Shown here one piece after another: positions 1 to 54,775 of a DNA stretch of 64,000 nt. A program made the position numbers and the translations under genes. Origin of the DNA: Octopus sinensis (lineage: Eukaryota); the NCBI RefSeq assembly GCF_006345805.1, contig NC_043006.1, forward strand, positions 64,914,001-64,978,000. The letters run 5' to 3'. The first letter of the stretch is position 1. Each line of letters starts with the position of its first letter. The notes beneath the pieces are model-generated. The model was given only the letters and a program-made list of their open reading frames with translations. It was not told the origin of the DNA and made no database searches.

Positions 1-325
1 TCATTCAGTATTACTGTCTGAACTCCCTAATTGACTATGCAAATGACTGATTTGAGTCCTATTTAGTAGCTACCAGGAGTAGCAGCTTTCCCTAATTTCT
101 TATCCTTAGTAGTCATTTTAGCTGGTCCCTCAGATGGATATATTTGGAGTAAACCTGTTTCTTCCTACATATCCTCCACAGTCCCTAGCCTCTCATCATA
201 ACATTTCCAAACCATTTTGTTTTTAACATCAGTGAGGGAAGTGCACCACTGTCATTTTAAACTCACTTTTTCCCCTAATAACATCTTGATTCACTTAGAC
301 ACATTGCTTTGCAATCCAGAACACT
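1..325 (-). mobile_element. RTE-clade LINE ORF2 remnant (linker before RT)
   Basis: Minus strand reads VFWIAKQCV*VNQDVI..., a decayed form of the RTE VFRIAKQ..NQDV.GEKC motif. Confidence 0.6.
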
Positions 326-651
326 TAACGACTCTGATCCACTCATTTTTAAATATTTCTTTATTACCCACATGGGGCTAAACATAGAGGCGACAGACAA
401 GTGAATTAAGTCGATTACATCGACCTTAGTGCGTATTTAAATTGATTCCAAAAGAATGAAAGGTGAAGTACTCATTTAAATTGACTCCAAAAGAATGAAA
501 GGCGAAGTCGATCTCGGCGGAATTTGAACTCAGAATGTAATGGCAGATGAAGTACCGCTGAGCATTTTGCCCTGTGTGCTAACAATTCTGCCAGTTTGCT
601 GCCCTACTCATTGTTAAATATTGGCACCCCTCTTGTTTTCGTTTCTCTCCT

Positions 652-950
652 TCATCATCATCGTTTAACGTCCGTTTTCCGCACTAGCATGGGTTGGGGA
701 AACCAGGTTCTGGGAAACCAGGGTCTGGGAAGCCAGGGGCTGCACCAGGCTCCAGTCTGATCTGGCAGTGTTTCTACAGCTGGATGCCCTTCCTAATGCC
801 AACCACTCCACGAGTGTAGTGGGTACTTTTTACGTGCCACCTGCGCAGGTACCAGGGGAGTCTGGCATCGGCCACGTTCGGATGGTGCTTTTTATGTGCC
901 ACCGGCACAGGTATCACAACTACTATTTCCATTGATATTTATTTCGATGT
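652..950 (-). mobile_element. RTE 3'UTR-derived short repeat with (ATG)n/(CAT)n tail. More than 20 copies, e.g. 3640-4024, 5305-5690, 21170-21400, 23610-23878, 28004-28370, 31940-32230, 34226-34619, 39440-39760, 46150-46620, 57783-57945, 60560-60850
   Basis: Shared core catcatcatcgtttaacgtccg..ttccatgct.gcatgggttggacg...ctggatgcccttcctaa.gccaaccactc; same sequence as the 3'UTR of the RTE copies at 22312 and 48195. Confidence 0.85.
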
Positions 951-959
951 TCATCATTT

Positions 960-1880
960 GTAAACCTAACGCCTGTTTTAGATATTCTTTTAGTTTTTCC
1001 AGACTTGTCTTTTCACTTTTTTGATGTTATCTACAATATTGTAGATTATAGCCTACACCACCAGATGTTTAAGCATCTCAGCAGTGATTCCTGATGGGAC
1101 AGGACCTTTCCTTGTTTTCATACCTTTAATTGCTTTATCTACCAAGGCACTGTCAATTCGAACTGTTAGGTCGACATTTGGCAAACTTTCCCTCACCCAT
1201 TCATTCTCTTCATTTAGCAACCTTTCTTAATGGTGTCTCCAAGTCTCTCTCTTCGCAGCATCATTAAATGCGAGTGAGCCATCATCCATGTGGACATATT
1301 TCTCTCTCTCCTGTGGCATCACGATTCTCTCTCACACACTGTCTTGCAATATGAAACACTTCAATTCTCTGGTCCTCACAACGCAGAACATTTAAATTGT
1401 TTGTGTAACAGAACTCCAGGAGTCTTGCACATTTTTTATTCCCTGTGTCATATTCATAGCCATTACAGAGAGCTGCTCAAAATGTCCATTAATGTCCCTC
1501 ACTTTGTTATGAAATTGATTTCATTATTGAGGTGGTCTGCAACAGATTCTTAGTGAAATGGTTCATTTGCTCATCTGTCAGTCCCAGTTATGATACATAA
1601 GCAGAGATAGTTGCTATTGTGACTATGACTAGTCCTAAGTTAACTATTCTCTCCTATACTTTGGCTACTTTATCTACTTCTCTGTCAGTATCATATCCTC
1701 TTCTCCCTGCCTAGAAAAATTTATACTGTGCTCTTTGCCTGTGAGCAGTCAGGTTGTGGCTCACATGCATCTCACCTCTTGTACACAACAATCATCTATT
1801 TAATCATCAGCTCTAGTATCTCAACAATCTTTCAAACCTGCCTTTCGTTGTACCAACACTGACAGTGGCAACTCTGAATT
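960..1880 (-). mobile_element. RTE-clade LINE remnant: APE endonuclease and start of RT, degenerate
   Basis: Minus translation includes RVATVSVGTTKGR..., QYKFF*AG, ISAYVS*LGL and ENEWVRESLPNVDLTVRIDSALVDKAIKGMKTRKGPVPSGITAEMLK, with stops. Confidence 0.8.
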
Positions 1881-4346
1881 GTTTTACTTGACAAAAAAGT
1901 AGAGAATATCCAATAGTGATTCAGGTGTTATGTTTTGTCTTTTACTTGTTTCAGTCTTTGGACTGGGGCCTTGTTGGAACATTGCCTTGAAGGCTTTTAG
2001 TTGAAACAATCAGCCCCAGTACTTATTTAAATCTGGTACTTATTCTATTGGTCTCTTTTGTTAAACTGTCTTTTCTCCTCTCACTACTCCCTGTCTTAAT
2101 ACCCCCACCTCAAGTCCCACCCACCATCCTCTAATACACTTAGCTTTCCATATTTAATTATTCCATCTTTGAACTTCTCTGCATTTAGATCTGAAATGTA
2201 AGATCTTCTCTTCCTGGAAGATGGAGGCTTGTCTCATCCTATGTTAAATGCATCTGTACGACCAAATTTTCTGATGGACTAAATCTACAAACATTATTAT
2301 GGCTTGCTAAGCCCCAGAAACAACTGTTGCACTTGTAACACCTTTCTCCCACCCCTTTAATTTTCTCTGTCGTTTGTACTCTGTGTGAGTGGACCCTTTT
2401 ATACGTATACATGTATACATATGTTGTATTTGATATATTTAATATACTTTATATATTAATGCGCCTAATTTGCTTCTATACTTGCTCTTATTCCTTATTC
2501 CTCCCTCTTATTCCTTTCTATACTTTGTGGAATATCCCCTGTAAAGATGTTGGAGTTTAAGCAGCAACTCTTTTGATGTCCTTTGAAATGGGTCTTGGCA
2601 ATGCCAGACCTCCAATTACCATCATTCCCATAAGTCAATAAAGTGAAGGATGTTACATGATCAAATCTGTTTCCGTGGCCGTCAGTCTTTTTGATCATGT
2701 ATCATGCAGGAGATCGAGTAAATATAGAAAATTTTTAAATAAAAAAAAAACATTGGTTTAAAGTTAAAAATATGTCATGAGATGTTTTGGCATTGCTGAG
2801 TTGATGCTGACTTATTTGACATTAGGCATTTTAATGTTTCTCCCATTCTCTTTCTCTCTTCTTTCAATCAGAGTTGATAATTACTAAGCAAAAGTTTGTT
2901 TTTTGCTGTTGTTATGTCGAGCAAACTGGAGTGGTTCATCCTGTGTTGTGCTCAAAGTACTGTACAATAGCTGTAGGAAGATTGTAACTCAGTTGTAGGC
3001 AATGATTCCAAAAACATTGAATTATTCTCATTTAATACAGCGAATAACAGATGAATACATTAATGCTCCAGTGTGGCCATAGCCCACCAAATGAAGCTAG
3101 TCAAGGACAGAAAGTGTGTGTGTGCATGTACATATATATCAATTATATTCAACTAAGAAATTGCTATGTCTCTTTCCTTCTCTTTTTCTCATTATATGGC
3201 TGTGTGGCAAGTAGCTTGACTACCAACCACATGGTTCCAGGTTCAGTCCCACTGTGTGGCACATTGGGCAAGTGTCTTCTACTATAACCTTGGGCTGACC
3301 AAAGCCTTGTGAGTGGATTTGGAAGATGGAAACTGAAAGAAGTCCTTCAAATATATATATATGTTTGTGTGTCTGTGTTTGTCCCCCCCAACCATCATGT
3401 GACAACTGCTGTTTGTGTGTTTATATCCCCGTAACTTAGTGTTTTGGTAAAAGAGACCGATAGAATAAGTACTAGGCTTACAAAGAATAAGTCCTGGGGT
3501 CGATTTATCTGTTGTGTGTGAATAGATAATTGAAAAAAGAAGGAGTATGGTTGGACATTTATTTTCAATCACTACAATTGTTTCTACACAACATACTTCT
3601 CCAGGTGTGCAGGTAGAATTTTCAATTATATATAGATAGATAGATTGGCTCCTGTGCTGGTGGCATGTAAAAAGCACCATTCGAATGTGATCGACGCCAG
3701 GACCGCTTGACTGGGCCCTGTGCTGGTGGCACATAAAAAGCACCATCTGAACTTGGCAGATGCCAGTACCCCCTGTGCTGGTGGCATGTAAAAAGCACTA
3801 TCCGAACATGATTGATGCCAAACCCGCCTGATTGGCTCCTATGTCTGTGACACTTAAAATGCGCCCACTACATTCATGGAGTGGTTGGTGTTAGAAAGGG
3901 CGTCCAGCTGTAGAAACATTGCCAAATCAGATTGGAGCCTCGTGCAGCTTGTGGCTTGCCAGTTCTCAGTCAAACCATCCAACCCATGCCAGTATGGAAA
4001 ACGGACATTAAACATTGATGATGATGTGTGTTTGTGGGTGTTTGCCTCCTGTCCAAAAAAGTACTATCACCAAAACAGGTTCAATATCCACTCAGCTATT
4101 CCCAATTGTCGTTTACCTTCTCTTGTGCATTCTTGTGAATAACCAAATTATGAACATTAATGTACATTTTGTAATGTCTTGGAATAATATTTTTAAAAAT
4201 TTGCAAAGTGGTTTGCAAATTTCTTGCATTACTGTACTGGCTCTAATATAAAACACTTAATGTATGATTTATTAATCACATAACTAATTGACTAATGCAC
4301 TCAAGTAATTAATTTATTGTCTTGAAATTGTAAACATGATGTTTAA

Positions 4347-4377
<31 letters not shown>

Positions 4378-5789
4378 AAGTGCTCAGATATTTATAGATG
4401 TTGTCATGGAAAAAAATTAACAAGTGGTTTGCACTGCTTTTGACGAGTGATGGTGAGAATGGACACCAATTTATTTTATTTATTTTTGTTTTTATAATGT
4501 CCTCTTCTCCATTCTTGCATCAGTTTGATGGAATCTGTTGTGGCAGATTTTCTATGTCTGGATGCCCTTCCTGTTGCCAACCCTTGTTTCCAATGGTTGG
4601 ACATATTTTCATGGACTTTTGGAAATAAAGGATGCTGCATGTATGATGGTGACACTCATTTACAGCAATCACATATACATGGTGCTAATATACATGTGTG
4701 TTCATGTGTATATATATATTCTTTTATTTGTTTCAGTCATTTGACAGCGGCCATAGTGGAGCACTGCCTTTAAACAAACAAATCGGCCTCAGGACTTACT
4801 CTTTGTAAGCTTAGTACTTATTCTATTGGTCACTTTTACTGAACCGCTAAGTTACGGGGACGTAAACACATCAGTTGTCAAGTGATGGTGGGAGGACAAA
4901 CACAGACACACGTATACGATGGGCTTCTTTCAGTTTCCATCTACTAAATCCACTTACAAGGCTTTGGTCAGCCCAAGATGCCACACAGTGGGACTGAACC
5001 CAGAACCATGTGGTTAGGAAGCAAGCTACTTACCACACTGCCACTCCATACAGTCGTCACTAAAGTGACGGAGAGTGCTAGTAAGCACCAACATTGCTGG
5101 AAGTAAGAGTCAAAACTGTTAGCCATGTGAGATCACTTTTCTAATGGCAGACAAGGGAGACAGGTCATTAGAAAAGTGCTCTCACGTGGCTAAGAGTTGT
5201 TTTGACTCTTATTTCTAGCATTGCTGGTGCTTAAAAATACCCTCCGTTGCTCTAGTGACAACTGTACTTGTTGCCTATCGGTTCTAAATTGCGAATAGCC
5301 ACATCATCATCATTGTTTAATGTCTGTTTTCCATGCTGGCATGGGTTGGACCGGTTGACTGGGGACTGACTGGCAAGCCAGTAGGCTGCACTAGACTCCA
5401 ATCTGATCTGGCAAGGCTTCTACAGCTGGATGCCCTTCCTAATGCCAACCACTCTGAGAGTGTAGTGGGTGCTTTTTATCTGCCACCAGCACCGGAACCT
5501 GTCAGATGGCACTGGTATTGACCACATTTGGATGATGCTTTTTACATGCCACCGGCACAGGAGCCAATCAGTGAGGGGTGGGGGGATTGGCATCAACCTA
5601 TGCTTGAATGGTGTTTATGTGCCACTGACACGGGTGCCAGTCAGGCAGCACTGGCATTGGCCACAACTACAACTACAAAATTTTCATTTTGATTTTGATT
5701 TTTATACACACACACACACACATATATAATAGGCCTCTTTCCATTCTCATTTGCCAAATCCACTCACAAGGTGTGTGTGTGGACACATA

Positions 5790-6400
5790 AAAGGTGCAGC
5801 AACATGAGAGGAAGGTTTACAAGGAAACTAACATTTGTATGTGGAAGGTTCACAGATACAATAAATACCAAAAATACGCAGAAAACAAGCTAGAGGTAGT
5901 TGATAGCTTTCATTATCTAGGTGACCAAGTTAGTCATGGAAGTGGATTCTCCGAGAGCATAGCTGTGAGAATAAGATTAGGCTGGGCAAAGTTCAGAGAG
6001 CTACTCCTGCTGGTAGCAAAGGGCCTCTCTCTCAGAGTGAAAGGCAGATTGTTTGATGCCTATGTGTGAACAGCTATGCTGCATGGCAATGAAACATGGG
6101 CGAATATATGCGTAGGTTTGAGAGAAATGAAGCCAGTATCCTTTGCTGGATGTGCAATGTCAGTGTCCTTGATCGACAGAATGTAAGCATCTTGAGAGAA
6201 AAGTTAGGCATAAGAGGAATCAGATGTGATGTGCAAGAGAGACGATATGTTGATATGGTCACGTGATGCATATGGATGAGGACAGCTGGTAGAGGTAGAT
6301 CCAAGAAGTCATGGGACAAGGTGGTGAAGCATGATCTTTGAACTTAAGTCTCTTAGAGACAATGACTGGTGACAGACCTTTGGTGTTGTGCTGTTGACCA
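5790..6400 (+). mobile_element. RTE LINE ORF2 C-terminal remnant
   Basis: LEVVDSFHYLGDQVS...RIRLGWAKFRELL...LSLRVKGRLFDAYV, then a GRSKKSWDKVVKHDL-like tail. Confidence 0.88.
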
Positions 6401-7499
6401 CACAGCTACACCTGTAGCAGTTTATGTTGATTACAATTTGAGGATGTTCACCCTTTCAGTCAATCCACTGAATTTAGTGACCATTCAGCTATGTTTGCAT
6501 CTGTTGACTAATGTAGTTTATTGCTTATAGTTCTGGTGGGTTGGTGGTTGGGGACATATTGTAGGACTAAACTCAGAACACACACACACACACATGGTGG
6601 TTTTTTTCATTTTCTACTGAATTCATTCACTAGGTTTTCATTAGCCTAAGTCCATAGTAAAGAACTTTCCTGAGGAGGAGACTGGAGTAATTAGTCCTGT
6701 GTTGTCAGATTACTACACATTAGCTCTAGGGAGATTTGTAATCCATTTATGAGTAGGTATTTCCAAAATGATATTCAATTATTCTCATTTAACACAACAA
6801 ATAACAGATGAATATATTAATATCAGTGCCCAAGCATGACCATGACCTACTGAATGAAGCTAGTAAAAAGGTGTGTGTGTGTTATCTGTGTTGAGTAGAA
6901 ACCAACTGTTGCAAAGAGAATGCCTGTGTTTCAGCTAATTGATATTCAGCTCCAAATGTCAGACCTGATTGAACAGGCCTATGAACAAAAGTATTCCAAG
7001 TGTGGCCATCCTGACTTGCTTGCGGGTATAGTGTGTCTCTGGCAATATTGTTCAATGTATCCTGACTTTTTATTTTTTCTGTTTTTTAAGGTGGGTGAGT
7101 GAGATCTGAGGGGGATGTACCTTCTTATTTTTTTCAGGTTAATGTGAAGTATATGGTTTAGATACTAATGCTGACTCAATGAAAGATATCCCCCTCACAC
7201 ACACACACTACAGTAATTGTATTAATATTCATTATTCATGGATTACTGAATAATTTAGTACATTAGCATGACACCTGTTTCGATTTTCAATATTTAATTA
7301 GTGATTAATACATTGACATGATGTCTGCTTCCAATTTTGATATTTGGAGTTAGAAAGGGGAAGTAAGCAGTTGTCAAAAGAGATTTTTTTTAGCAATTTT
7401 ATTTGTGTGTTTGAAGTTTAATAGAGTTTATTTTGATGTTTTAATTTTCTATTTTTTTCTGGCTGGTTCTGGGGAAAGGGTCAGTGCCTGTGACATGCT

Positions 7500-7700
7500 C
7501 TCTTAAACTGGTGAGACTAATGCCATTTATTTTTTTGAACCTTTGAAAGTGAACACCTGTGAGAAACATAGGAGCAGGAAAAGAATTCCAAATGGTTGAT
7601 GTTCTGGAAAGGGAGGACATGGTATGAGGATTAGTGCAGGACCTGGATTGGGTTGGATACGACAAGGATGATGGGAGAAAGGGATATGATTCAGATAGGA
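7500..7700 (-). mobile_element. CR1/L2-type LINE ORF2 C-terminal remnant
   Basis: SSLSRTSTIWNSFPAPMF...FQRFKK resembles the CR1 end F.RT..LWNSLP..VF...NL..FK. Confidence 0.65.
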
Positions 7701-10700
7701 GTGTCTGGACAATGATGGCACGATGAACAAAGCCAATAATAAAAACACACCCACTGGTTCAATTTTACTTCATTATTATTTGTCATTAGGTTAATCAGTG
7801 AATCAGTTGTATTTGCCAAAGTCCTTTCATTGCCATTCATGGCCTCCTCAATGATATGCCCCTTCTGCTCCAAAATGAAATAGTCTTATATATATTTTTG
7901 ACAATATCAGCTCTGTTGTGTCTGATAAAAGTTATTGTTTAGAGCTTAAAATACATTTCGAGTAATTCTCTTTGTAAGATAAACTTTCACTTTGTGCTTA
8001 CAATATATTTTTGTCACCTAAAAATGTGAAAAATAAAAAAAAAAACATTGCAATTATTTGGTTTAAAAATTTCCCCTGAGTCATATGTTATTTCTTTTCT
8101 TTTTTTTTATATATAAATGTGCAGGATGTGTGTATTTATTTTCTATTTTTACTCATTGATTTTGAAGATATATGTGAATAAAATCATGACATGGCAAATT
8201 CAGTGCTAAAGGGCTTACTGAAAAGAAGCAAGAAATTTTAATTATATTTGCAGCTGTGGTATGGTGAAAGAATCATTAGCTTAATGATCAATTCTTGCTA
8301 ATAAAGGCAGGGGAAATGGTTCCAAAATCTTAGTTGAAATTAATTAAAATGGAATGTGAGCAATGTCTTTGTTATAAGTCTCATGTTAGTGAGTATTGTA
8401 GGCATGTCTCAGTCTTATTTCAACTCTTCAGTGACTGAGGAGTTTAAATACATAGACAAAGATGGCTTGTGATACATGCATCATCATCATCATCATTTTA
8501 ATGCCCAATTTTCCATGCTTGCAAGAGTCAAATAAAATTTATTGAGGCATTGAACCAGATGACTTTCCTGTCACCAACCCTCACTTGCCTCCAAGTAATA
8601 TTTCCCCTTGGCCATGTATCCCCAGGGCATGATACATTGTACAATGTTAAGACAAGCGTTCACACACACACACAATGGGTTTCTTTTCAGTTTCCATTTC
8701 CCAAACCCATTTTGAAAGTTCTGGTTGGCTTGGGTTCTGGTTTTATCGTTGCCTTTGAATGTCTGTTTTGCCATAATTACATGGGTCAGATGGGATTTGT
8801 GGAAACAAATTTTTTTTATGGTCCTATCACTAGTCACTTGTTTCCAAGTGAGGTAATATTTACCCCTGGGTGGACATGTTTTCATGGAAGATTGGAAATG
8901 AGGGACACTGCTTGTATGACAGTGATACTCATTTACAATTATTACCAGTTACACAGAGTCAAGACATGGTGCCATTAACACATGCAATCGTGTGTGTGTG
9001 TCTGACTGTGTATACACACACACATACACATATATACACATACACGACAGGCTTCTTTCAGTTTCCATCAACCAAATCCTCTCACAGGGCTTTGGTCGGT
9101 CAAGTGCTACTTGCATGCAGTAGGACTGAACCTGAGACCATGTGGTTGGGAAACAAACTTCTCAACCACACAGCCATGCCTGTTAAAACTTCACATACTA
9201 CTTCTTTACTTGTGGAGTGTCTCCATGAAGGATTCTTGCTTTTGTAGGAAACTGTTTTAGACAAAGAAAATTGTGGGTGTGTGTGTCCAGTTGTCTTCTA
9301 AAGATAGGATGTACATACATATATTGTTATCCTTATTTAACATCAGTTTTCCATATTGGTATGGGTTGGACTATTTGACAGGAGCTGGCAAGCAGCAACA
9401 GGCTCCAACTGTTTTGGCATGGTTTCTATGGCTGGATGCCCTTCCTAATGCCACCCACTTTACAAAGTGTACTGAATGTTTTATACATGGTACCAGTACG
9501 GGTGCCTTTTATGTGATGCTTGCATGTGTGTGTGTTTTATTTTGGAATTACTTAAATCCACAGTTCTCAAACGGACAAATACCAAGTCTCCAAAATAATA
9601 TTGGTGAAATTCATGCCCCATTGCCAACAGGCATGCCAGTGTGGTCACAAGGTTTGCTTTGTTACCATATAGTTCTGGGTTTGGTCCCACTGCATTGCAC
9701 CTTGGGCAAATGTCTTCTATTGCAAGCCTCAAGCTGACTGATGCCTTGTGAGTCTAATGGAAACTGAGAAGAAAGCCATTGCACATGTTTTACTGTGAAT
9801 GTCATTCCTTGGTCCTCATTAATATTATCTGAGCAAAAACAGTGTCTTGTGCCTGTGTTTAGTATCTGGTGAGAAGCAAAAAGTTCTGTAGTTTCAGCTT
9901 TCAATGGGTGAGGATCAAAGGAATGAAATGATACCTTACTTGGAAAGTAAGATGCCATCAACCTTTACTTGGTAATAGTTGGTAACAAGAAGGGTCATTA
10001 GCTGTAGAAAATCTGCCTCAACCAAGTTTTGTCTTACCAATAATCGTCCAAATTATTCTCCCTTCTTTGGCATGGTGTTCGACAAATCTAAAGTCTAAAA
10101 CCATATTAATTTTATTAAACATAGTAATCTATTTGCCCCTTTTCAGTCCTCATAGGCATGAAAGCCTCCTACTCCTTGAGAAACACTGGCTTAAACAGAC
10201 GGAGAAGGGCAGTGCCAACAAAGTTTGCTAGACTTCAGCGTCTGTTGAGGAATAGTTGGAAGAAATACCTCCTCTCAGGACATATCAGAACACAGTTTCT
10301 ATCCTCAGGCTGGAGATCTGGTCAGATTGCTTGTAAGTGAACTCTGCTAAAGATGGCCAAATGCCAGACAGTGGTGTTAAATTGTTTTTTCTGTTACGGT
10401 TATAACCCAAGAACATATATAATGAATATCATGAGCTTTTGCACAGTGGAATTAATCAGGGAACATCATGATTGTGAAGTGAACTTCACCGTCTGGATTA
10501 GTATGACGCAGTTCTCCTGTGATTACTAAGTGCTGTGCTTACTTGAGTTAAGAAATTTTGCAAGAACTTTCTCGCTTTCTTTCGTAACAAGTGCAGGCAT
10601 GCCTGTGTGGTAAGAAGTTTGGTTCCTAACAACATGGTTCTGGGTTCAGTACCACTGTGTGGTATCTTAGGCAAATGCCTTCTATTATAGCTCCAGGTCA

Positions 10701-13700
10701 ACCTAAGCCTTGTGGGTGAATTTCATCATCATCATCATTGTTTAATGTCCGCCTTCCATGCTGGTATGGGTGGGAAATTTGGTTGATGGAAACTGAAAGA
10801 AGCCCATTGTATGTGTGTTACAGTCTCTTTGCCTTCGCATCATATCGTTTGTAAATGATCATCACTGTCATGAGAACAATGGCCTTCATTTTCAGTGTTT
10901 CACAAAAACACGCCTGGTCATGGGGGAAATATTACCTTATTTGGTAACAGATGAATATTAACAAAAGAAAGGACATCCAGTCATAGAGAATCTGCCCCAT
11001 TTCCATCCAACCCATGCAAACAGAGAAAAGTAGTTATTAAATGATGATGATCTAATAGATTACACAAGTTGTCCATTATTTAACATGTTAGCCTTTGTTT
11101 AAAGTGATTTAAGCTTTTTGTTAGATAAAGCTTCACTTTGTGTTTATAATAAATTTTCTAAGAGACAAGAAAAGACATAAACGCTATGACAGGCCAGCTG
11201 TTGAAAATATATACATATGTCAATTGTCCTGTGTGGTTTTTAAGACCATTAATATGAAATACTCCTAGTTCTAATATCTACTTATGAATGAGCTCTTTAT
11301 GCATAGTTTGTGTCTTCTTTGAGTGACACACTGATACAGTCTCTTTTGAAACGGATCTCTACAGATTTAATCTTGCCATCTTTCTTATTGCCTTGTGAAG
11401 GGTGTAATGTTAAAAAAAATTAAAAAGTGTGTTTGAATGACTTCAATGGAGAATTACATTCAAGGACTGAGTTTATATAGTTTAATGTAGGTGCAGGCAT
11501 GGTTGTGTGGTAAGAAGTGCTTGTTTCCTAAGCATATGGTTTGAGGTTCAGTCCCATTGTGTGGCATCTTGAGCGAGTAGTATCTTCTACAGCTTTGGGC
11601 TGACCAAAGCCTGTGAGCAGATTCAGTAGATGGAAACTGAAAGAAACCTGTCGTGTGCATGTGTTTGTGTCGATGTTTGTCTCCCCCACCAGCACTCGGC
11701 AACTGATGTTGATGTATTTACATTCCTATAACTTAGCGGTTCGGCAAAAGAGACTGATAGAATAGGTACCAAGCTTAAAAGATAATATGTAATGCAGTCG
11801 ATTCATTCGACTGAAACAAATAAAAGATGAAAAATACGTATGCTTCACTGGCTTCAGTAGAGAATCATATTCAAGGACTGAACTTTATATAATTGACTCT
11901 ACCCTCTCTCTCATATACAAGGCTTTGTGCTATGAAAGAAATCAATATTTGTGTGTGTGTGTGTGAAAAGTCGTTATTTCTGTTAATTACATGAGACCAC
12001 CTGAGCTGGAAAATATGGTGTTGTGTTTGTATTCCCAGTGAACATTAACCTCCTGCTGTTCCTGCTATAACTAATAGACTATGACTACTGCAAATGAGAG
12101 GAGTCGATCACCTCAAGTAACTAGCCAATAGCACGTGAGTAGTTTATGGAATCCAGATACTATCGCTGTTGGTGTTTACCCACACTTGTACTTTGATGAA
12201 GCAAACCTACAATCAAAAACATTCCAGTCATGACTATCCCCCTTTTCTTGGAATTGTATTATTTATTTTTTCCCATATAGGTGCATGCATGGCTGTGTAG
12301 TAAGAAGCTTGCTTCTCAACCATATGGCTCCAGGTTCAGTCTTACAGTGTAGCACCCTGGGCGAGTGTCTTCTACTGTAGTGTTGGGCCAACCAAAGCCT
12401 TGTGAGTGGATTTAGACAGAAATTGAAAGAAGCGCATTGTGTATGTGTGTTTGTCCTCCCACCACTGATTGACAATCAGTGTTGGTGTGGTTACATCCCT
12501 GAAACTTAGTAGTTCAGCAGAAGAGACTAATAGAATAAATACCAGGTTTTTAAATAAAATCCAAAGAACTGGTATCAATTCATTTGACTAAAAATTCTTC
12601 AAGGCAGTGTCCCAGCATGGCCACAGTCTAATGACTGAAACAAGTAAAAGGTAAAAGATTTTGCATGGTAGGGTGAGATTTAAGAAAGATTTGGTTGCTC
12701 TTTTTAGCAGATTACAGAACAGTGTAGAGGCATCCTTATTAGTTCATGTAACAAGATGTATAGTGGAGAGGTAAGTTCCAGGCAAACCACTGCCATTTCT
12801 TCTGGAAGTTCCAATCTGTCTAGGAGGTGGGGAGGTGTATGGCTACATCTGGAAGGTCATAGATTTTAATCAAAGATGACCTAGGGCTATACAACAGTAG
12901 TTTACTGCACAAAGCTTCAAATTTAAGTGGACAGCGAGCTGGCAGAATTGTTAACACTGGGTGAAATGCTTAGCAGTATTTCATCTGCCGTTATGTTCTA
13001 TGTTCAAATTCCGCCGAGGTCGACTTTACCTTTCATCCTTTTGGGGTCAATTAAATAAGTACCAGTTACGCACTGGAGTCAATGTCATTGACAATCCCTT
13101 TGTCTGTCCTTGTTTGTCCCCTTTGTGTGTAGACCCCTGTGGGCAATAAAGAAATAAATTTAAGTGGACAGTATAGTCAAATTGGACCCTAGTAAGTGAC
13201 CGGTACTTATATTATTGATCCTTGAATGAAAAGGCCAAGTTGAGCTTGACCGGAGTTTGAACTTAGGATATATTGAGGGGTAACTAAATGTCATTACTAT
13301 AACTAATAATTTGTTGGATATTTTGTAAGAAGGAAGGTAATGTATTTTATTGATTCTGTTGGTTACTGTTGCTTGTTTTATTTACCCTGGGAAGGTTGAA
13401 ATACAAAGCTGACCTCAGAAGTTTACTTTACCACCTTGTGGTTTTTCAGGCTCAGTTTAACTGTGGTGCACTTTGCACAATGTTTTCTCCTGTAAACTTA
13501 GGCAACCAGTACCATGTGATTAAATTTGGTTGACAGAAACTGTACAACGCCATTTATGTGTGTATGTATCTCTCTATATTAATGTTTGTTTTTATGTTCA
13601 GTTATAAAAAAAATTTTTACATTAATCTGATGGGTTACTCCATATTTTTGTAGAGTACAAATATATTACTCTTATACAGGAATGTTTTTGACAGTGACTT

Positions 13701-15430
13701 CAAAATTTTGGCCTGCTAAGCCATTGTCAGACTGCAATCTGATGATGGCTTAGCTAGCCAAAACTTCAAAGTTACTATCAACAGCATTCTTTGTGAGCAT
13801 ATATATATGGAGAGAGATTTGACATGTTCACTTAACCGTGTCAGCCTTAATTTTCGGTGCCAATAATATTGTCATATGATATGAATACACAGACTTAGCA
13901 GGGAACTTACAAAAATTTCTAAGTCTAATCACGTAATCACCCTCTGCCAATCAAATTCTGTCCTAAACAGATACTAATTCGAGCCATGTTCTCTCTATAA
14001 AAACAACAGAATTTTTAAATGCCATACAGTTGTGGCATAGCCCTATGTCTTTCTATCTCAACTTTTGAAAACTAGAGAAATGTATGAAACCAGTTAAGCT
14101 TTTAAAAATAAATTATCTAAAAGACTTGGTACAAGCATTATTTAATGTCTGTTTTCCCATGCTTGCATGGGTCAGACAGAATTTGTTGGGGTAGATTTTC
14201 AACAGCTGGGTACCCTTCCTGTTTCCAAGCAAGGCAATATTTCCCCATAGCCTGACATGTTGTTTGTGGAAGACTGGAAATGAACAATGCCACTTGTATG
14301 ATAGTGATACTCATTTACAACCATCACATTATGTCAAGACAAAGCTACATGCAAATATGCACATGCATGACGAGCTCCTTTTAAGTTTCTAGGTGTCAAA
14401 CCCACACTCAAGGCTTTGGTTAGCCTTGGGCTATAGAAGAAAACACCAAAGTGTCGCACAGTGGGACTGAACCTGAAGCAATGTGGTTGACAAGCAAGCT
14501 TCTTAACCACACAGTCATGCCTGTGTGTGTGTTTATCATCATCATTTAACATCCACCTTCCATGCTGGCATGGGTTGGACAGTTTGACAGGAGCTAACCA
14601 GGCAGAAGATTGCACCAGACTTTTGTGTCTGTTTTGGCACTGTTTTTATGGCTGGATGCCCTCCCAAACATCTACCACCACACAGCTTGTATGAAAATCA
14701 CTGATCCACAAGCAGTCATTTCTCTGTCAGCAAATTGTCCACTAGCTCTGAGCTTTTGAAGACAACTGGAAGAAAACACCCTTACTTGAAAAACAGGTAA
14801 AGGTTAGTAATGGGGAATGTGTCTGGTTGTAAAATGATGCCTTGATAAAACTTTAATTCATCTAACCCATACCAGCATGTGAAATCAGACATTTAAATAT
14901 ATATGAGTACAAAGAGACTTAATTAAATACTATAAGGGAGATAATACAGCAATACTTTTTTTTCTTTTTTTCTACTCCAGGCACAAGGCCTGAAATTTTT
15001 AAGGAGAGGGCCAGTCAATTAGATCAGCCCCAGTATGCAACTGGTACTTAATTTATTGATCCCCAAAAGGATGAAAGTCAAAGTCGTCATTAACGGGATT
15101 TGAACTCAGAATGTAACGGCGGATGAAAACCGCTAAGCATTTTACCCCAGCATGCTAATGTTTCTGCCAGCTTGCCCGCTTAATAATATGGCAATACTGA
15201 TTGCATCACTAATAATAATGATGACTCACGAAAATGTTTTCTTTAATATTATGTTGTCTTCAAGTTAGATAAATTAGGCACAAGACTACATATTTTGTTG
15301 AACATAGAGTTTATTATATCAGGCTCCAGTATTTGAGTAATATGTCTTTTATTGATGTCTCTTCACCCATTCAGCTAAAGGACAAAATTTTATCAAGTAC
15401 TTGTATTAAATTTTTCATTATCTTTTGCAG

Positions 15431-15544
15431 CTGACAGATGGGAAAGCAGAAGTGTTTGGTACAGAACTGGTGAAGGGGAAGAAGGCCACTTTCCTGCCAA
15501 GTTCAAAGTTAGCTGTCTTCACATGGCATGGATGCAGCATCAAA
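15431..15544 (+). CDS. CLP1: CLP1 coding exon (first found in window): LTDGKAEVFGTELVKGKKATFLPSSKLAVFTWHGCSIK
   Basis: Acceptor tcttttgcag. Manual translation aligns with the CLP1 N-terminal domain (human GMAEIFGTELTRNKKFTF..KVAVFTWHGCSVQ). The exon ends at the non-canonical donor ATATCCTTT. Confidence 0.95.
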
Positions 15545-16993
15545 ATATCCTTTTTATGTATTTATTAGCTACATATTTCCTTTTATTGCATGTGTGTGTG
15601 TATGTATTCGCGGATACAGAAATAGCTGCTGTTAATGGTTTTTATGTTCTGCAGTTGATCCTGCTGTGCTGCACAGTAGGACTGGTTTTACTTGTAATTC
15701 AAAAGACCAGTTTTGATACCGATTGTATTTGAGAATTACGTTAAGGGTACAATTGACTGTGACATCATGCTCAGCCATTTAGACTATAACTCAATGGGTG
15801 GCTAGTTCTGCCGATGGGATTAGATAACTCATCTGCTGAAATCAATCTTCAATCTTCGTGACTCTGTGTATGTATATATACCATCATTTTAATGCCCACT
15901 TTTCCATGTACGCATGGTTCAGAGGAAGTCTCTTGGGGCAGATTTTTTATGATAAACACCCTTCTTGTCACCAGCTTTTGTTTCCAAGTAAGGTCAAATT
16001 TCCCCATCACCAAACATTTTCACAGAAGATTGGAAACATGTGACAGTGACACCAATTTACAACAAACACAAGGAAACACTAACATGCATGTGTGCGCATG
16101 TACACACGCTCGCGATGGGTTTCTTTTAGTTTTCATCTACCAAATCCAGTCTAGAGTAGCCTAGGGCCATAGTAGAAGATATTTTTTCAAACTCTATGCA
16201 GTAGAACAGAACCCAAAGCCATTTGGTTGGGAGGCAGACTCCTTACCACACAGCTATGCTTGTACCTACATATATGTGTGTGTGTGTAAAGGCACATGAC
16301 TCGGTGGTTAGAGCGTCGAGCTAACGATCATGAGGTTGTGAGTTTGATTTCTGGACTGGGCTGCGTGTTGTGTTCTTGAGCAAGACACTTTATCTTATGT
16401 TGCCCCAGTTCACACAGCTGTAGAAATGAGTTGTGACATCACTGATACCAAGCTGTATTAACCTTTGCTTTTCCCTTGGATAACATCAGTGGCATGGAGA
16501 GAGGAGGCTGGTATGCATGGGTGACTGCTGGTCTTCCATAAAAACAACCCCAGGTTGTGCGTTTGCTGGTGAAACGACTTTCCGCCCACACTTTTACCCC
16601 AGAAGGGAACCACTTAGGTGTACCCATGGTCATTCATGACTGACAGAGTTGAGTTTTATATATATAGTTTTTGCTTGATGGAAACTGTAGTGGTTCATTA
16701 GATTGATTTTGCATGTGATTCAAAGAACCAGCCTTCTTAGTATTACACTGAATCTGTTTTAACATTACATCTAATGTATTAGTGACTGTAGAATAATTAG
16801 CTACTCTTTTGAACAACTGGATGATCTTTGAAACCAGTAGCAAGCAGTGTTTAATTTTAGCCCTGGTGATGCTGGTTCTAATCCAGCATATAGCCAGCAT
16901 AAATTTCTGGTTGTCTTGGGAACAAACACACTGAATGTATTTTATTTTTTTTTGTTCTACCTCTCTGTAAATTTATCCTTAATTCTTTGTTAC
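15545..16993 (+). other. CLP1: U12-type (minor spliceosome) AT-AC intron of CLP1, phase 0, 1449 nt
   Basis: 5' splice site ATATCCTTT at 15545, U12 branch point TCCTTAAT at 16976-16983, and terminal AC at 16992-16993. The join gives GCSIK|LIGKTE, colinear with human GCSVQ|LSGRTE. Confidence 0.93.
16290..16640 (+). mobile_element. tRNA-headed SINE with CORE-like central domain (related copies 44705-44990, 49455-49710, 51815-52060)
   Basis: Head ggcacatgactcggtggttagagc; central gtgttcttgagcaagacacttta..cagttcacacagctgtagaaatgag resembles the CORE domain. Confidence 0.6.
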
Positions 16994-17119
16994 TTAATTG
17001 GTAAGACCGAAATGGCTTATGTCTCAAAGGATACTCCAATGGTGATGTACTTGAATGTCCATGGAGCATTGGAACAGATGAAACGGAAGGCCAGTGAAGA
17101 GATGGGTCCTGGACCCAGG
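16994..17119 (+). CDS. CLP1: CLP1 exon: [42 protein letters not shown]
   Basis: Matches human [37 protein letters not shown]; donor agg|gtgagt. Confidence 0.96.
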
Positions 17120-17349
17120 GTGAGTATATTTCATCAGTTACATTCATCTCTCTCTATCTTATTTTACTCTTTATATATTAGCAAAATATGTATAGCTACA
17201 AATATATGCATGCACACATATATGTAGCTGTACTCTCTCTCTTTCATCATCATCATCATTTCTACAGCCTTGCTTACTTCTGGTTAATTAAAATTGTATC
17301 CCATAATTGATTGAGTTTACCTCATCATTAAAAGCTATAGAGTTATACA

Positions 17350-18985: not shown

Positions 18986-19099
18986 ATTATGATTGTTGGA
19001 CCTAAGGACGTTGGTAAAAGTACCGTTTGTAAGCTGCTCCTGAATTATTGTGTGCGAGCTGGCCATGCCCCATTATTTGTGGATATTGATGTTGGACAA
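18986..19099 (+). CDS. CLP1: CLP1 exon with P-loop and Walker B: [38 protein letters not shown]
   Basis: Poly-T..tgtag acceptor and caa|gtgagt donor; GPxDVGKS Walker A and DxDVGQ motif of Clp1 kinases. Confidence 0.97.
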
Positions 19100-20653: not shown

Positions 20654-20681
20654 AGTATGATTTCAATCCCTGGTACCCTGG
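20654..20681 (+). CDS. CLP1: CLP1 28-nt micro-exon: SMISIPGTL(+1 nt)
   Basis: Acceptor ctttgtttccag and donor g|gtaagt; fills the SVSIPGTM gap in the alignment with consistent phases (0 in, 1 out). Confidence 0.92.
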
Positions 20682-24432: not shown

Positions 24433-24606
24433 CAGCAGCAGTTGTAGAAAGACCTGCAGACATTGAAGATGGCTTCATCCAGTCCGTGGCACCTGTTGTC
24501 TACCATTTTGGCCATTTTAGTCCCAATGAAAATCTTGCTCTGTACAACCTCCTCATCAGCAGACTAGCATCAGTAATCCAGTTGAAATGTGAGGCAAATA
24601 AGAAAA
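24433..24606 (+). CDS. CLP1: CLP1 exon: AAAVVERPADIEDGFIQSVAPVVYHFGHFSPNENLALYNLLISRLASVIQLKCEANKK
   Basis: ERPAD.E.GF...AP.VYHFG motif; tandem CAG acceptor; donor a|gtaagt. Confidence 0.95.
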
Positions 24607-25079
24607 GTAAGTATATCATCATCATCATCATCATCGTTTAGCATCCGCTTTCCATGCTAGCATGGGTTGGACGGTTCAACTGGGGTCTGGGAAGCCAGAA
24701 GGCTGCACCAGGCCCAGTCTGATCTGGCAATGTTTCTATATATATTATGTGTGTATGTGTGTATTTCTCTCTTACTTTTTGAAAGTGCATGGCCTGTTGG
24801 TTTGATCTGTAGATATATACACACAGGATGACAGTGCTAAGCTGTGATGTGTAGAAAACTTGTTACCAGTTAGAAGTTTGTATTTATACACATCACCACT
24901 TAGCGCTGTCACTCTGTATTTTATTGAACAATGATGGGAATATCATATCTCTCTCCTGTCAGTTCACAGTGTCTACCTCTCTGGTTTTTGTTGCTGAAGA
25001 GAGGAGATAATCACTCCAAAATGCATGTATGCAACAGTCTGGTTAGGTGGCACTGAAAGCTGACTTGGTGTGTTTACAC

Positions 25080-25692: not shown

Positions 25693-25782
25693 CTAACCTC
25701 AGTGGTGTCATCATCAACACAAGTGGCTGGGTGCGAGGTGGAGGTTATCAATCGCTAGTACATACAGCTGGAGCATTTGAAG
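25693..25782 (+). CDS. CLP1: CLP1 exon: [30 protein letters not shown]
   Basis: Matches human [27 protein letters not shown]; acceptor ctgtttcag, donor g|gtcagt. Confidence 0.96.
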
Positions 25783-29035: not shown

Positions 29036-29136
29036 TGGACATCATAGCAGTGTTAGACCAAGAGAGATTGTACAATGAATTGGTGCGAGATATGCCAGAC
29101 TTCGTGAAAGTTATCCTGCTGCCAAAATCTGGAGGG
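29036..29136 (+). CDS. CLP1: CLP1 exon: [34 protein letters not shown]
   Basis: [10 protein letters not shown] and LLPKSGG motifs; acceptor tttgcag, donor ggg|gtaagg. Confidence 0.97.
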
Positions 29137-29765: not shown

Positions 29766-29904
29766 GTTGTTGAGAGAAACGCCCACAGCAGAACAGAAAG
29801 CCGAGACAGCAAAATCAGGGAATATTTCTATGGAATCAGAAACACATACTTTCCTCATTCGTTTGAAGTGAAGTTCACTGATGTCAAAATTTACAAAATA
29901 GGGG
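29766..29904 (+). CDS. CLP1: CLP1 exon: [46 protein letters not shown]
   Basis: Lid region RxxxRDxxIREYFYG; acceptor ttattag, donor g|gtgagt. Confidence 0.96.
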
Positions 29905-31436
29905 GTGAGTATTCTTTTACTTTTTCTCTTTGTCGTAGGTGTGGCTGTATGATAAAAGGTTGCTTTCCCAACCACATGATTTCAAGTTCAGTCCCACTCA
30001 TGACACCTTGGGCAAGTGTCTTCTACTACAGCCTCAGGCTGACCAAATCCTTGCGAATGGATTTAGTAGATGGAAACTGAAAGAAAAACATTTGTATGTG
30101 TGTGTCTGTTTGTTTCCCACCTCCGTTTGACAACCAGTATTGGTGTGTTTATGTCCCTGTAACCTAGTGGTTTGCCAAAAGGCACTGATAGAATAAGTAC
30201 CTGGCTTTCAAAAAAATAAGCATTGGTATTGATTCGTTTGACTAAAGGTGGTTGCCCCAGCATGATTAAAACAAGTAAAAGATTGTCAGTTAATCAGCTC
30301 AGCTTTAGCAGTTGTTGTTTAACCCCAGGTCTACCTTGATCATGCACACCTATAGTCAGAGGTGTCATGATCCGTCCTATTTTTTATCAAGACTTGGAGT
30401 AGGAGTACTACTGCAGTATACAATATATCATCCCTTTTTTTTAATTCTTATTTCAGTGTATGTTGTAAGCCTAAAAATGAAAAAGTTATTTTAGTAAACC
30501 CCTTCAAATTCTTAGTTATTTTCAAACCTCAAATAGTCAGTGTGTTTCATTAAATAATATGCTCACAAAAGGGTTCAATGATTCTGCTGACCATATAGTT
30601 AAAAATAAATTAGAAATAACTGCTGTTGCCTTGAGATAAGTTTGGGGTCCAATTTTCCATACTCTTAGCAATATGGTTTGATATGAACCTACAGGGGTAC
30701 TTCTCTAAGATCGGGGCCAAACAACGATGATGTGGTTTGGTATATTTTATTATTTCTGTACAAATGTCTTATGCTAAAGACAATTTGCCAACATAATGTG
30801 ACTGTCCTGGAAGGGACAACTGCTACTATTGTTTTGCCCCAGGAAACATTATTTCCAGCTGGCTATATAGCACAATATCTGTGTCATATTTTCAAACAGG
30901 GAGTCTAGCACCCCACCCCACTCCAGTCCAAAACAACATCTGTGGACTGGTTTCAGGGTAATTGTTCTTTATCAATACAGAATAACTGCTTGGCTAGGTG
31001 GCGTTGCCGAATTCACTGTTCGAAAATATATATTTTTCAAAGTGACACATAGTCACTGATCTAATAAAAGAGAAACATTATTATTTCTAAATCTCTCAGA
31101 AAGAGATATTCAGTAACAGTTCTTTAAAGTAAAGGCTGTTTGCCAACATAATGTGGCTGTCCTGGAAGGGACAACTGCTTCTGATGTTTAACCCCGAGAA
31201 ACATCGTTTTCAGCTGGCTTATAAGACACAATATCTGTGTCCTTATATTGCCTTATAAGGACACAGATATGAAAAGCCATTCCAATTAGATAAAACAAAC
31301 TCAGCAGTGTACTGCTGACCTAGGAGCTAAATACTTGATAATTTGAAGGAATTTGTTAAAATAGTAACTTATTGATTTGACAACCCTGTATAGTTTTGCA
31401 TAAGACAATTATTCTCTCTTTCCCTCTGTCTTTTAG

Positions 31437-31517
31437 GCCCACATTTACCTGATTCTTGTTTACCATTGGGAATGAAATCACAAGACAGTAAGACAAAACT
31501 TGTTCCCGTTCAACCAG
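31437..31517 (+). CDS. CLP1: CLP1 exon: GPHLPDSCLPLGMKSQDSKTKLVPVQP
   Basis: PDSCLPLGM motif; acceptor ctgtcttttag, donor g|gtaatt. Confidence 0.96.
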
Positions 31518-32864
31518 GTAATTTCTCACTCTTTCTCTTTCTCTGCTTTTCTGTCTCCACCTCTCTCTTTTTCTCTCTCTTTCTCTTTTCTCTCTCTCTG
31601 CCTTTCTGTCACTATCTCTTTCTCCCCCATCTCTCTCTCTCCTGTGTTATTGAAATCAGATGTTTTCCCACATTCTCTGGAAGGTCAGCAGTTTTATGGG
31701 GAGAGAGAGATTAGTCAATTACATCCATCCCAGTACTTGCCTGGTACTTTATTTTGACCCCCAGATGAATGAAAGACAAAGCTTACCCTAGCAGCAACTG
31801 AACTCGGGACATAAAAGTTAGAAAAGATACATGAAGATCTCTCTTCCAACTGTTTACATTCAACTTTGCCATTCATCTTTCTGGGGTCGATAAAATAAAA
31901 TACCAGTCAAGTACAGGGGTCAGTGGTGACACTTGTCTCATCATCATCATCATCGATTAACGTCCGTTTTCCATTTGACAGTTTGACTGAGGACTGGCAA
32001 GCCAGGAGGCTGCACCAGGCTCCAATCTGATCTGGCAAGGTTTCTACTGCTGGATGCCCTTCCTAACGCCAACCACTCCAAGAGTGTAGTGGGTACTTTT
32101 TATGTGCCACCAGCACAGGAGCCAGTCAGGCAGCACTGGCAATCACCATGCTCGAATGGTCCTTTTACATGGCACAGGACCAGTCAGGAGGCAATGGCAT
32201 TGACTACACTCAAATGGTGTTTTTTACGTGCCAATCAGGTGGTAGTGGCATCTCTTCTCCTAAAAACTACAGGCTTTGTGTCTGAATCAGAAACCATAAT
32301 TTAAAGGCAAAATGCTGGACAAAATGCTTGCCGGTGTTTCTGTTACTTTAAACTCTTTATGTTGTGAGTTCAAATTCTGCCAATGTCAACCTTGCCTTTG
32401 GTGCAGGAGTGGCTGTGTGGTAAGAAACTTGCTTACCAACCACATGGTTCTGGGCAAGTGTCTTCTACTGGAGCCTCAGACTGACCAAAGCATAGTGAGT
32501 GGATTTGGTAGATGGAAACTGAAAAATGCCTGTGTGATTGTGTGTCTATGTTTGTCCCCCACCATCGCTTGACAACTGAAGTTGGTGTGGTTACGTCTCC
32601 GTAAATTAGTTCAGCAAAAAAAAAAGTCACCGCTAGAATAAGTACTAGGCTTCCAAAGAATAAGTCCTGGGGGTCGATTTGTTCAACTAAATGTGGTGCT
32701 CCAATATGGCCACAGTCAAAATGACAAACAAATACAAGAATATGAAAAAAGAGTAAGAGAATATCCCTCTGGGATCAATAAAATAAAATACCAGTCAAGT
32801 ATTGGGGTTGATGGTACTGACTATCCACTTCTTCCTAAAATTGCTGGCCTTGTGACAAAATTTG

Positions 32865-33630: not shown

Positions 33631-33721
33631 GTGTGAACTTAATGCATCATGTGTTAAGTATGAGTGCAGCCACAAGTTTAGAAAAACTAGTCGAAGTGAA
33701 TGTGCTGGGATTTGTAGTTGT
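33631..33721 (+). CDS. CLP1: CLP1 exon: GVNLMHHVLSMSAATSLEKLVEVNVLGFVV
   Basis: Matches human GRDMVHHLLSVS...VAGFIVV; acceptor ctcttttcag, donor gt|gtaagt. Confidence 0.94.
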
Positions 33722-34881: not shown

Positions 34882-34993
34882 AACCAATGTTGATGCTGAC
34901 CGTCAAGTGTTTACAGTGCTGGCGCCAGCTCCTCGACCACTACCCAAAACTTACTTACTACAGATGGACATACAATTCCTTGATATAAAATAA
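34882..34993 (+). CDS. CLP1: CLP1 last coding exon: [37 protein letters not shown]
   Basis: Matches the human C-terminus [37 protein letters not shown]; stop TAA at 34991-34993. Confidence 0.96.
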
Positions 34994-46138: not shown

Positions 46139-48194
46139 ATATGACAAATAAATCAAATTCGATGACTGGTATCCGTACTAGTGGAGTGCTAAGAGTACTA
46201 TATGAGCATGATCGTTGCCAGAGCAACAAGCTGGCTTCTGTGCTGGTGGCACGTAAAAAGCACCATTCGAGCGGGATTGTTACCTGCATTGCCTTACTGG
46301 AGCTCGTGCCAGTGGCATGTGCAAAAACATTTGAGTGAGGTCGTTGCCAGTGCTGCTGGACTGGCTCCTGTGCAGGTGGCATGTAAAAAACACCATTTGA
46401 GTGTGGCCGTTGCCAGTACCACCTGACTGGCCCTCGTGCCAGCGGCATGTAAAAGCACCCACTACACTCTCAGAGTGGTTGGCGTTAGGAAGGGCATCCA
46501 ACTGTAGAAACTCTGCCAGATCAGACTGGAGCCTGGTGCAGCCATCTGGTTCGCCAGTCCCCAGTCAAATCGTCCAACTCATGCTAGCATGGAAAGCAGA
46601 TGTTAAATGATGATGATGATGATTTGACTGACAGATTTAACCTAAAGCTTCCTATTGGTCAACTGTTTGATGAAAGGTTTTCTAGCCATGACCATCATGT
46701 CTTTCAATGCATTTACATCTTTTCATTTTTTTTTTATCATTACTATCTTTAAATGGTGGAATCTGGTTTGATGGCTTTTGGCTGCTATTTCTAGCATGCA
46801 GAGTGATCACTTAAAGCATTGAATTTATAAGTGAGACTTCAATCCTTTACAACTAATTTATCTTTAATCTTTTACTTGTCTCCATCAGTTATCAGAATAA
46901 AAGATTTGGATGGAGTTACCTTCTCTTAGACGAGCAATTAAAGAACTGGAGGGCCTCACCTGCTCTAGGTCTGCTGAGGTGTGTGTCAGGGACTATTTGC
47001 AGAGGTATGCTAAATAACTCATAGCTGGGTGGGCCTTGACAGCCGCTAGTACTCTGGATGAGAGTAGACCTGGGAACAAAAGTGGATAAGAAGTGATGCT
47101 ACACTCCTCAAAACCCTGGAACTCCTGAACCAGGCCTCAATAACTGGATGTAGCTTAAAGTCATACCCAACCAGAAATAATAGAGTACCAGTAAAATTCT
47201 GGGTTCAAACATAACCAAAGAAATTTTACCTTTCATTCTTCCAAGGGTCAATAAAATAAGTACCAGTCATAGAATGTGGTTGGATCAATAAGCTGTCATT
47301 TGCAAATATATCACCTCTTTGTGGCTATCTTTTAGCTTTTACTCGTTTCAGTCATTAGACTGTGGCCATGCTGGGGCACCACCTTGAAGAATTTTTAGTT
47401 ATTTGAATGAATGGACCAACTCCAGTTCAAACACTTTTCCATGGAAGATTGCAAATTACATTGTTTCGTATGATGGTAATATTTGATGGAAATTTAAGCA
47501 GGAGGGCTGGCAGAATCGTTAGCATGCCAGACAAAATGCTTAATGACATTTCGTTCATCTTTATGTTCTCGTAATTTCATTCAGGTTGACTTTGCCTTTC
47601 ACCCTTTCAGGGTCAAAGAAATAAAATGTAATCAACTATAGACACAGGAGTGGTTGTGTGGTAAGTAGCTTGCTTCCCAACCACATGGCACCTTGGGCAA
47701 GTGTCTTCTACTATAGCCTTGGGCCAACCACAGCCTTGTGAGTGGATTTGGTAGACGGAAACTGAAAGAAGCCCGTTGTATATATGTGTGTGTGTGTTTG
47801 TGTTTCTCCCCCATCACCATTGTTTGACTACTGATGGTGGTGTGTTTATGTCCCCTGTAACATAGCAGTTTGGCAAAAAAAAAAACAATAGAAGTACTAG
47901 GCTTACAAAGAATAGGACCTGGGGTTGATTTTCTCGACTAAAGGTGGTGCTTCAGCATGGCCACAGTCAAATAACTGAAAAAAGCAGAAAAATAACATCC
48001 TCCTCCAAAATTGCTGGCCTGGAGCCAAAATTTGAAATCATTATTATTCAGGTCACTGCCTGGAATTGAACTCGGAATCTTGGGGTTAGTAGCCCGCACT
48101 CTTAACCATGGGTATATGGCATAGTGGTTCAGGGGGTGGGCTACAAACCCCAAGATTCCGAGTTCGACTCCAGGCAGTGACCTGAATAATAATA

Positions 48195-54317: not shown

Positions 54318-54504
54318 GGCACAGGAGTGGCTGTGTAAAGGCGTAGGAGTGGCTGTGTGGTGAGTAGCTTGCTTACTAACCACATGGTTCCGTGTTCAGT
54401 CCCACTGCATGGCACATTGAGTGAGTGTCTTCTACTATAGCCTTGGGCCGACCAAAGCCTTGTGAGTGGATTTGGTAGATGGAAACTGAAAGAAACCCGA
54501 CATA

Positions 54505-54563
<59 letters not shown>

Positions 54564-54775
54564 ATGTTTGTGTGTCTGTGTTTGTCCCCTCAGCATTGCT
54601 TGGCAACAGATACCGGTGTGTTTACATCCCCATAACTTAGTGGTTTGGCAAGAGAGGCCGATAGAATAATTACTATGCTTACAAAGAATAAGTCCTCGGG
54701 TCAATTTGCTCAACTAAAGGAAGTGCTCCAGCATGGCCACAGTCAAATGACTGAAACAAATACAAAAATAAAAGA
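54318..54775 (+). mobile_element. tRNA-derived SINE family B (ggcgcaggagtggctgtgtggtaag...). Other copies 3195-3510, 4718-5046(-), 11490-11830, 12280-12660, 29205-29630, 29932-30282, 32400-32740, 33995-34782(-), 47640-47975, 50938-51290(-)
   Basis: Recurrent ~400-bp unit with A/B-box-like head (tggctgtgtggt, ggttcagtccc), a central (TA)/(TG) tract and a 3' tgactgaaacaagtaaaag end. Confidence 0.85.

Follow-up and report, generated by a model that had tools for sequence, protein, structure and literature searches.

Introduction

Introns of the rare U12 type, those of the minor spliceosome, include a subclass with AT-AC termini that was reportedly described by Hall and Padgett in 1994 and by Tarn and Steitz in 1996. 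In U12 introns the 3′ dinucleotide varies while the distance from the branch point to the 3′ end stays fixed. The gene considered here, CLP1, codes for polyribonucleotide 5′-hydroxyl-kinase Clp1, a subunit of the mRNA 3′-end cleavage and tRNA-splicing machinery. Human CLP1 is not known to be a minor-intron gene, and for that reason CLP1 is absent from human-centred minor-intron lists.

U12-type introns have been surveyed (PMC10639083), the minor introns of Octopus sinensis were catalogued there in bulk, and molluscs were found to be relatively rich in them, with minor introns being generally biased away from phase 0 (PMC10639083). In the same work, 136 minor introns were common to Saccoglossus (an acorn worm) and Aplysia (a sea slug) and 102 of these also occurred in human, counts which imply that human lacks dozens of ancestral minor introns (PMC10639083). 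Cryptic U2-type splicing around minor introns has also been reported (PMC8034651; 10.1101/2020.05.18.101246). Our literature search found no paper tying CLP1 to U12, minor introns or AT-AC and none tying CLPS3/At3g04680 to U12, and nothing on CLP1 was found in the supplements of two survey papers.

We analysed a window of Octopus sinensis DNA (the whole stretch of 64,000 nt) that contains most of the CLP1 coding region. From its sequence, we consider that positions 15545-16993 are, with a probability of about 0.93, coding intron 3 of CLP1 and a U12-type intron of the AT-AC subclass.

Results

Exons were placed by tblastn with a remembered human CLP1 sequence used as a lead only, followed by mapping with database proteins. 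CLP1 occupies the + strand of the window with eleven coding exons and an intact open reading frame. The first of them (15431-15544, found by tblastn and translation and preceded by the acceptor ttttgcag) corresponds to coding exon 3 of the O. bimaculoides model. It is followed by the exon at 16994-17119, which has the donor gtgagt at its end, the exon at 18986-19099 with the P-loop GPKDVGKST, a 28-nt microexon at 20654-20681 (SMISIPGTL) that is entered in phase 0 and left in phase 1, and exons at 24433-24606, 25693-25782, 29036-29136, 29766-29904, 31437-31517 and 33631-33721, while the final coding exon, stop codon included, lies at 34882-34993. When the first coding exons (amino acids 1-39) were searched for across the window, no match was found; alignment to the O. 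bimaculoides locus places the window start inside CLP1 intron 2 and the first two coding exons just upstream of it. The window from 1 to 15430 consists wholly of intron 2, with 83-91% identity to positions 6188-17280 of the O. bimaculoides locus sequence. No second gene was recognised 3′ of CLP1 in the window.

The resulting 389-amino-acid model is contained without mismatch in XP_029641814.1 (O. sinensis) and in CAI9727755.1 (O. vulgaris), and it shares 98% identity with Clp1 of O. bimaculoides (XP_014774939.1), which has the Pfam domains CLP1_N, CLP1_P and Clp1. The best protein matches to the model all carry PF16573, PF16575 and PF06807, and on full-length similarity together with the three domains the octopus gene is a CLP1 orthologue.

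Several other features of the locus were observed. The sequence of the microexon forms a separate exon of 27-33 nt in Nematostella, Capitella, Haliotis, Centruroides and O. bimaculoides, and is merged with a neighbouring exon in Lingula, Branchiostoma and Patiria. Short (CAT)n microsatellites occur directly 3′ of exon ends (24610-24635 and 17240-17255). Dispersed SINE-like repeats of about 300 nt, belonging to several families, fill the introns and the 35-64 kb region (for example, at 3197-3506, 11486-11816, 12278-12650, 29935-30264, 32402-32749, 47645-47994 and 54319-54778, with further copies at 4717-5047 and 50937-51291), and they give rise to spurious long ORFs with recurring peptide strings.

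Nine of the CLP1 introns in the window are GT-AG introns with ordinary donors. The remaining one, at 15545-16993 on the + strand, is 1449 nt long, lies in phase 0 and, given the two coding exons that precede the window, is coding intron 3 of the octopus gene. Its 5′ splice site ATATCCTTT (15545-15553) matches the U12 consensus /[AG]TATCCTT(T) at 9/9 positions. A putative branch-point sequence, TCCTTAAT, is found at 16976-16983; it fits the TCCTTRAY box expected about 10-15 nt upstream of a U12-type 3′ splice site, its last base being T where the consensus has C, and the likely branch A is position 16982 (the second A of the box), 11 nt before the last intron base. The terminal dinucleotide, at 16992-16993, is AC. 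On the + strand, the donor boundary reads ...TGCAGCATCAAA/ATATCCTTTTTATG... at 15544/15545 and the acceptor boundary ...AAATTTATCCTTAATTCTTTGTTAC/TTAATTGGTAAG... at 16993/16994. Joining 15544 to 16994 keeps the frame in phase 0 and gives the product ...FTWHGCSIK/..., which is colinear with CLP1 of many phyla, so that the intron combines AT and AC termini with a correct product, as in the U12-type AT-AC subclass. The preliminary description of this DNA had proposed a U12-type AT-AC intron in CLP1 with this donor, branch point, AC end and junction; we found every one of these elements where it had placed them, with the motifs at the exact exon ends and a product colinear with orthologues.

If the intron were retained, translation would continue for 7 codons (SIK-ISFLCIY-stop) up to an in-frame TAG at 15566-15568, read directly from the sequence, and thus a correct CLP1 protein needs the AT-AC splice. 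The interior of the intron has 80-86% identity between two Octopus genomes and is composed largely of dispersed repeats that are also present elsewhere in the window. Runs of (GT)n/(TG)n occur within it, for example at 15590-15603 and 16272-16287. Rfam and tRNA scans of the whole window detected no ncRNA family or tRNA within the intron, and the Rfam scan found no minor snRNA genes in the window.

Measured in the window, the frequency of the donor 8-mer ATATCCTT is 3e-5 per position and that of TCCTTRAY is 7e-5. With both strands of the window counted, the 8-mer has 4 matches against 3.1 expected, so that the motif alone does not exceed chance. However, the only + strand copy begins exactly at the base where CLP1 homology stops. 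The joint chance that a donor falls on the exact base, a branch box into a 10-nt window and AC on the exact acceptor position is, as a rough figure, 1e-9. It is therefore the placement that is significant and not the motif, because donor, branch box and AC coincide with the homology boundaries and with U12 spacing. In addition, every GT-AG, GC-AG or AT-AC pair close to the two exon ends that leaves the frame open was enumerated. The junction 15544/16994 was the only one giving an orthologue-colinear protein; no GT-AG or GC-AG pair near the exon ends did so, and the in-frame options among them lose at least 14 conserved residues.

For the comparison among animals, annotated CLP1 proteins were mapped spliced onto their own genomic loci, and a junction was accepted when it reproduced the protein exactly. 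An orthologous AT-AC intron was found at the same alignment column and in phase 0 in O. bimaculoides, Haliotis asinina, Lingula anatina, Capitella teleta, Centruroides vittatus, Patiria miniata, Branchiostoma lanceolatum and Nematostella vectensis. In all 8 species, AT-AC was the only solution with recognised termini at the site of 15544/16994. Position and type are thus the same in 8 other species from 7 phyla, the groups with the intron being cnidarian, mollusc, brachiopod, annelid, chelicerate, echinoderm and cephalochordate; a comparison of intron positions across CLP1 genes had been proposed earlier, and the mollusc, annelid and cnidarian genes share the same site and phase. The first 8 nt, ATATCCTT, are identical in 9/9 orthologous introns (octopus and the 8 species), and all orthologues contain CCTT[AG]A[CT] (CCTTRAY) with the branch A 9-14 nt from the intron end. 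Intron length ranges from 93 nt in Capitella to 4419 nt in the scorpion, and the flanking codons vary. As a control, we looked at 85 other introns from ten CLP1 genes, of which none had a U12-like donor or branch box (0/85), compared with 8/8 at this site. Since the intron is orthologous at the same codon boundary in cnidarians and many bilaterian phyla, its sequence distribution indicates that it is older than the cnidarian-bilaterian split.

A blind DNA pattern scan of a metagenome collection, using the FTWHGC codons followed by 9 nt and ATATCCTT, returned 10 contigs, all of which (10/10) proved to be CLP1 exon ends. Five of the 10 match a CLP1 cluster of anthozoans (corals) at about 97% identity, and in these coral-like contigs the CLP1 intron ends with AA, not AC, with TTCCCTAAC about 10 nt upstream of its end. 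Another eukaryote, represented by 3 of the 10 contigs, apparently also has an AT-AA intron; throughout the AT-AA contigs, coral-like ones and those of this eukaryote, the branch box is TTCCCTAAC or CCCTTAAT and stands 9-10 nt before the end. The last 2 contigs (JADMIO01...) belong to a GC-rich (53%) eukaryote in which the intron at this CLP1 site is AT-AC and 100 nt long and the CLP1 introns next to it are very short. Protein searches with CLP1 of the two non-coral metagenomic eukaryotes gave no match closer than 56% identity. Variation between AA and AC at a kept branch distance fits U12 introns and argues against a U2-type mechanism. The FTWHGC, 9-nt and ATATCCTT string is also a handy marker, only CLP1 genes having been retrieved with it from the metagenome collection.

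In vertebrates the situation is different. The lamprey Petromyzon marinus has a single exon spanning amino acids 22-110, with WHGC at amino acid 92, and the shark Chiloscyllium plagiosum has a single exon spanning amino acids 1-201, with WHGC at amino acid 67, so that in both the site is without an intron, whereas amphioxus retains the AT-AC intron. This agrees with the earlier suggestion of an ancestral U12 intron lost in vertebrates, the intron being present from cnidarian to cephalochordate and absent in lamprey and shark. CLP1 has 5 coding introns in lamprey and 1 in shark, and between them these retain 0/12 of the ancestral CLP1 intron positions (Nematostella to Octopus). One new intron position is common to lamprey and shark. 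These gene structures support the loss of the intron on the vertebrate stem together with every other ancestral CLP1 intron. The vertebrate gene looks like a retro-copy replacement in which introns were gained later, as the 0/12 shared positions point to a retro-copy and not to a single intron deletion or a U12-to-U2 conversion.

Discussion

The placement of the splice at 15544/16994 is a prediction from protein colinearity and from annotation, the latter possibly derived itself from RNA-seq. Concerning annotation, the preliminary description had suggested that automated models of this gene may be wrong. This concern is mostly unfounded, since the main public models splice the AT-AC junction correctly, and CLP1 can serve as a practical check that gene models handle AT-AC introns. 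The exact junction is present in the NCBI models XP_014774939.1 (O. bimaculoides) and XP_029641814.1 (O. sinensis), in one O. vulgaris model, in an Argonauta model and in the older JGI models of Capitella and Nematostella. One partial exception is CAI9727756.1 (391 aa), the other O. vulgaris model, which corresponds exactly to a GT-AG junction, 15469/17030. It uses a cryptic U2-type donor, GTGAAGGGG, within the upstream CLP1 exon (15470-15478, + strand), paired with a cryptic AG acceptor (...TCTCAAAG) within the downstream exon (17028-17029, + strand).

This model raises the possibility that splicing here mainly uses the cryptic U2-type GT-AG pair (15470 / 17028-17029) and that the AT-AC motifs are not functional splice sites. 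The exact fit of a public O. vulgaris model with GT-AG termini to 15469/17030 speaks for such a reading. However, that junction deletes 37 conserved amino acids, among them FTWHGC, a block with conservation across eukaryotes, and both of its sites are weak, the donor being GTGAAG and the acceptor being without a pyrimidine tract. Among the sequences compared, the Val codon that supplies the cryptic GT is found only in cephalopods, whereas the U12 motifs are conserved across phyla. Moreover, annotations of three Octopus species and of Argonauta contain the full-length AT-AC model. We therefore consider it very unlikely that the cryptic pair is the main route. CAI9727756.1 itself may be a genuine cryptic U2-type isoform and may equally be an artefact of GT-AG-only modelling; given this annotated O. 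vulgaris isoform, some CLP1 transcripts may bypass U12 splicing. The arrangement, a weak GT-AG pair in the flanking exons that spans the U12 intron, resembles the cryptic U2-type splicing described near minor introns (PMC8034651). Unlike the cases of that type (PMC8034651), the octopus pair is known from an annotation record alone and its donor is cephalopod-specific.

A small class of U2-type AT-AC introns is established, and the CLP1 intron could in principle belong to it and be removed by the major (U2-dependent) spliceosome. The donor of such introns is U1-like (e.g. ATAAGT), and no TCCTTAAC box lies near their 3′ end. The CLP1 intron, however, has a donor matching the U12 consensus ATATCCTTT at all nine positions, a branch box 11 nt from its end and no AG or pyrimidine-tract acceptor, and both motifs, unlike the remaining intron sequence, have been conserved over more than 600 Myr, which makes splicing by the major spliceosome extremely improbable. 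A U1-type donor, a distant branch point with a pyrimidine tract and the lack of TCCTTAAC, which together would place an intron in the U2-type class, are not what we found here. Finally, a chance coincidence of motifs, or a locus that is a pseudogene or a mis-assembly, has next to no likelihood: although the ATATCCTT 8-mer is not enriched in the window, the motifs lie jointly at the exact homology boundaries (roughly 1e-9 by chance), the ORF is intact over 11 exons and 100% identical to an annotated protein, and the O. bimaculoides genome, an independent assembly, shows the same structure, its intron being 80-86% identical.

Thus we favour a U12-type AT-AC intron, and by analogy with characterised U12 introns it would be removed by the minor spliceosome. 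The donor ATATCCTTT would be recognised by U11 and later by U6atac, and the branch site TCCTTAAT by U12 snRNA, its final T presumably forming a G-U wobble. The 3′ site would then be chosen for its distance from the branch A, 11 nt further downstream, and with the intron excised 15544 would be joined to 16994 in phase 0. Going by U12 introns in general, it is possible that this splice is slow or rate-limiting and gives the minor spliceosome control over CLP1 dosage. A more far-reaching and rather doubtful idea is that CLP1 dosage in non-vertebrates is coupled to minor-spliceosome activity through this single, extremely conserved AT-AC intron acting as a regulatory valve, which vertebrates would have discarded with the intron-less retro-copy. 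Retention would lead to a stop after 7 codons, and the cephalopod cryptic GT-AG pair to a protein with 37 amino acids deleted. In most animal phyla the intron would put a kinase of RNA processing (mRNA 3′-end cleavage and tRNA splicing) downstream of the minor spliceosome.

The CLP1 intron is a well-supported new but ordinary member of the known U12 class, already implicit in public annotation, and it leaves the concept of how U12 introns work unchanged. It is a clean case of a minor intron with deep conservation which, owing to its loss in vertebrates, does not figure in human-centred catalogues. As in the U12-type AT-AC class, the intron has a /ATATCCTTT donor, ends in AC and carries a TCCTTAAY box at 9-14 nt from its 3′ end, without a separate pyrimidine-tract/AG acceptor. 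It is also typical of the class in being the only U12 intron of an old "information-processing" gene whose many other introns are GT-AG, with a deeply conserved position and a variable 3′ dinucleotide (AA in corals). It departs from the U12 consensus in the T that ends its branch box and, unlike the average minor intron, for which phase 0 is depleted (PMC10639083), it lies in phase 0. Its distribution, present in amphioxus, echinoderm, protostome and cnidarian and absent in lamprey and shark, is like that of the ancestral minor introns lost in vertebrates (PMC10639083), with the difference that in CLP1 the loss was part of a wholesale change of introns.
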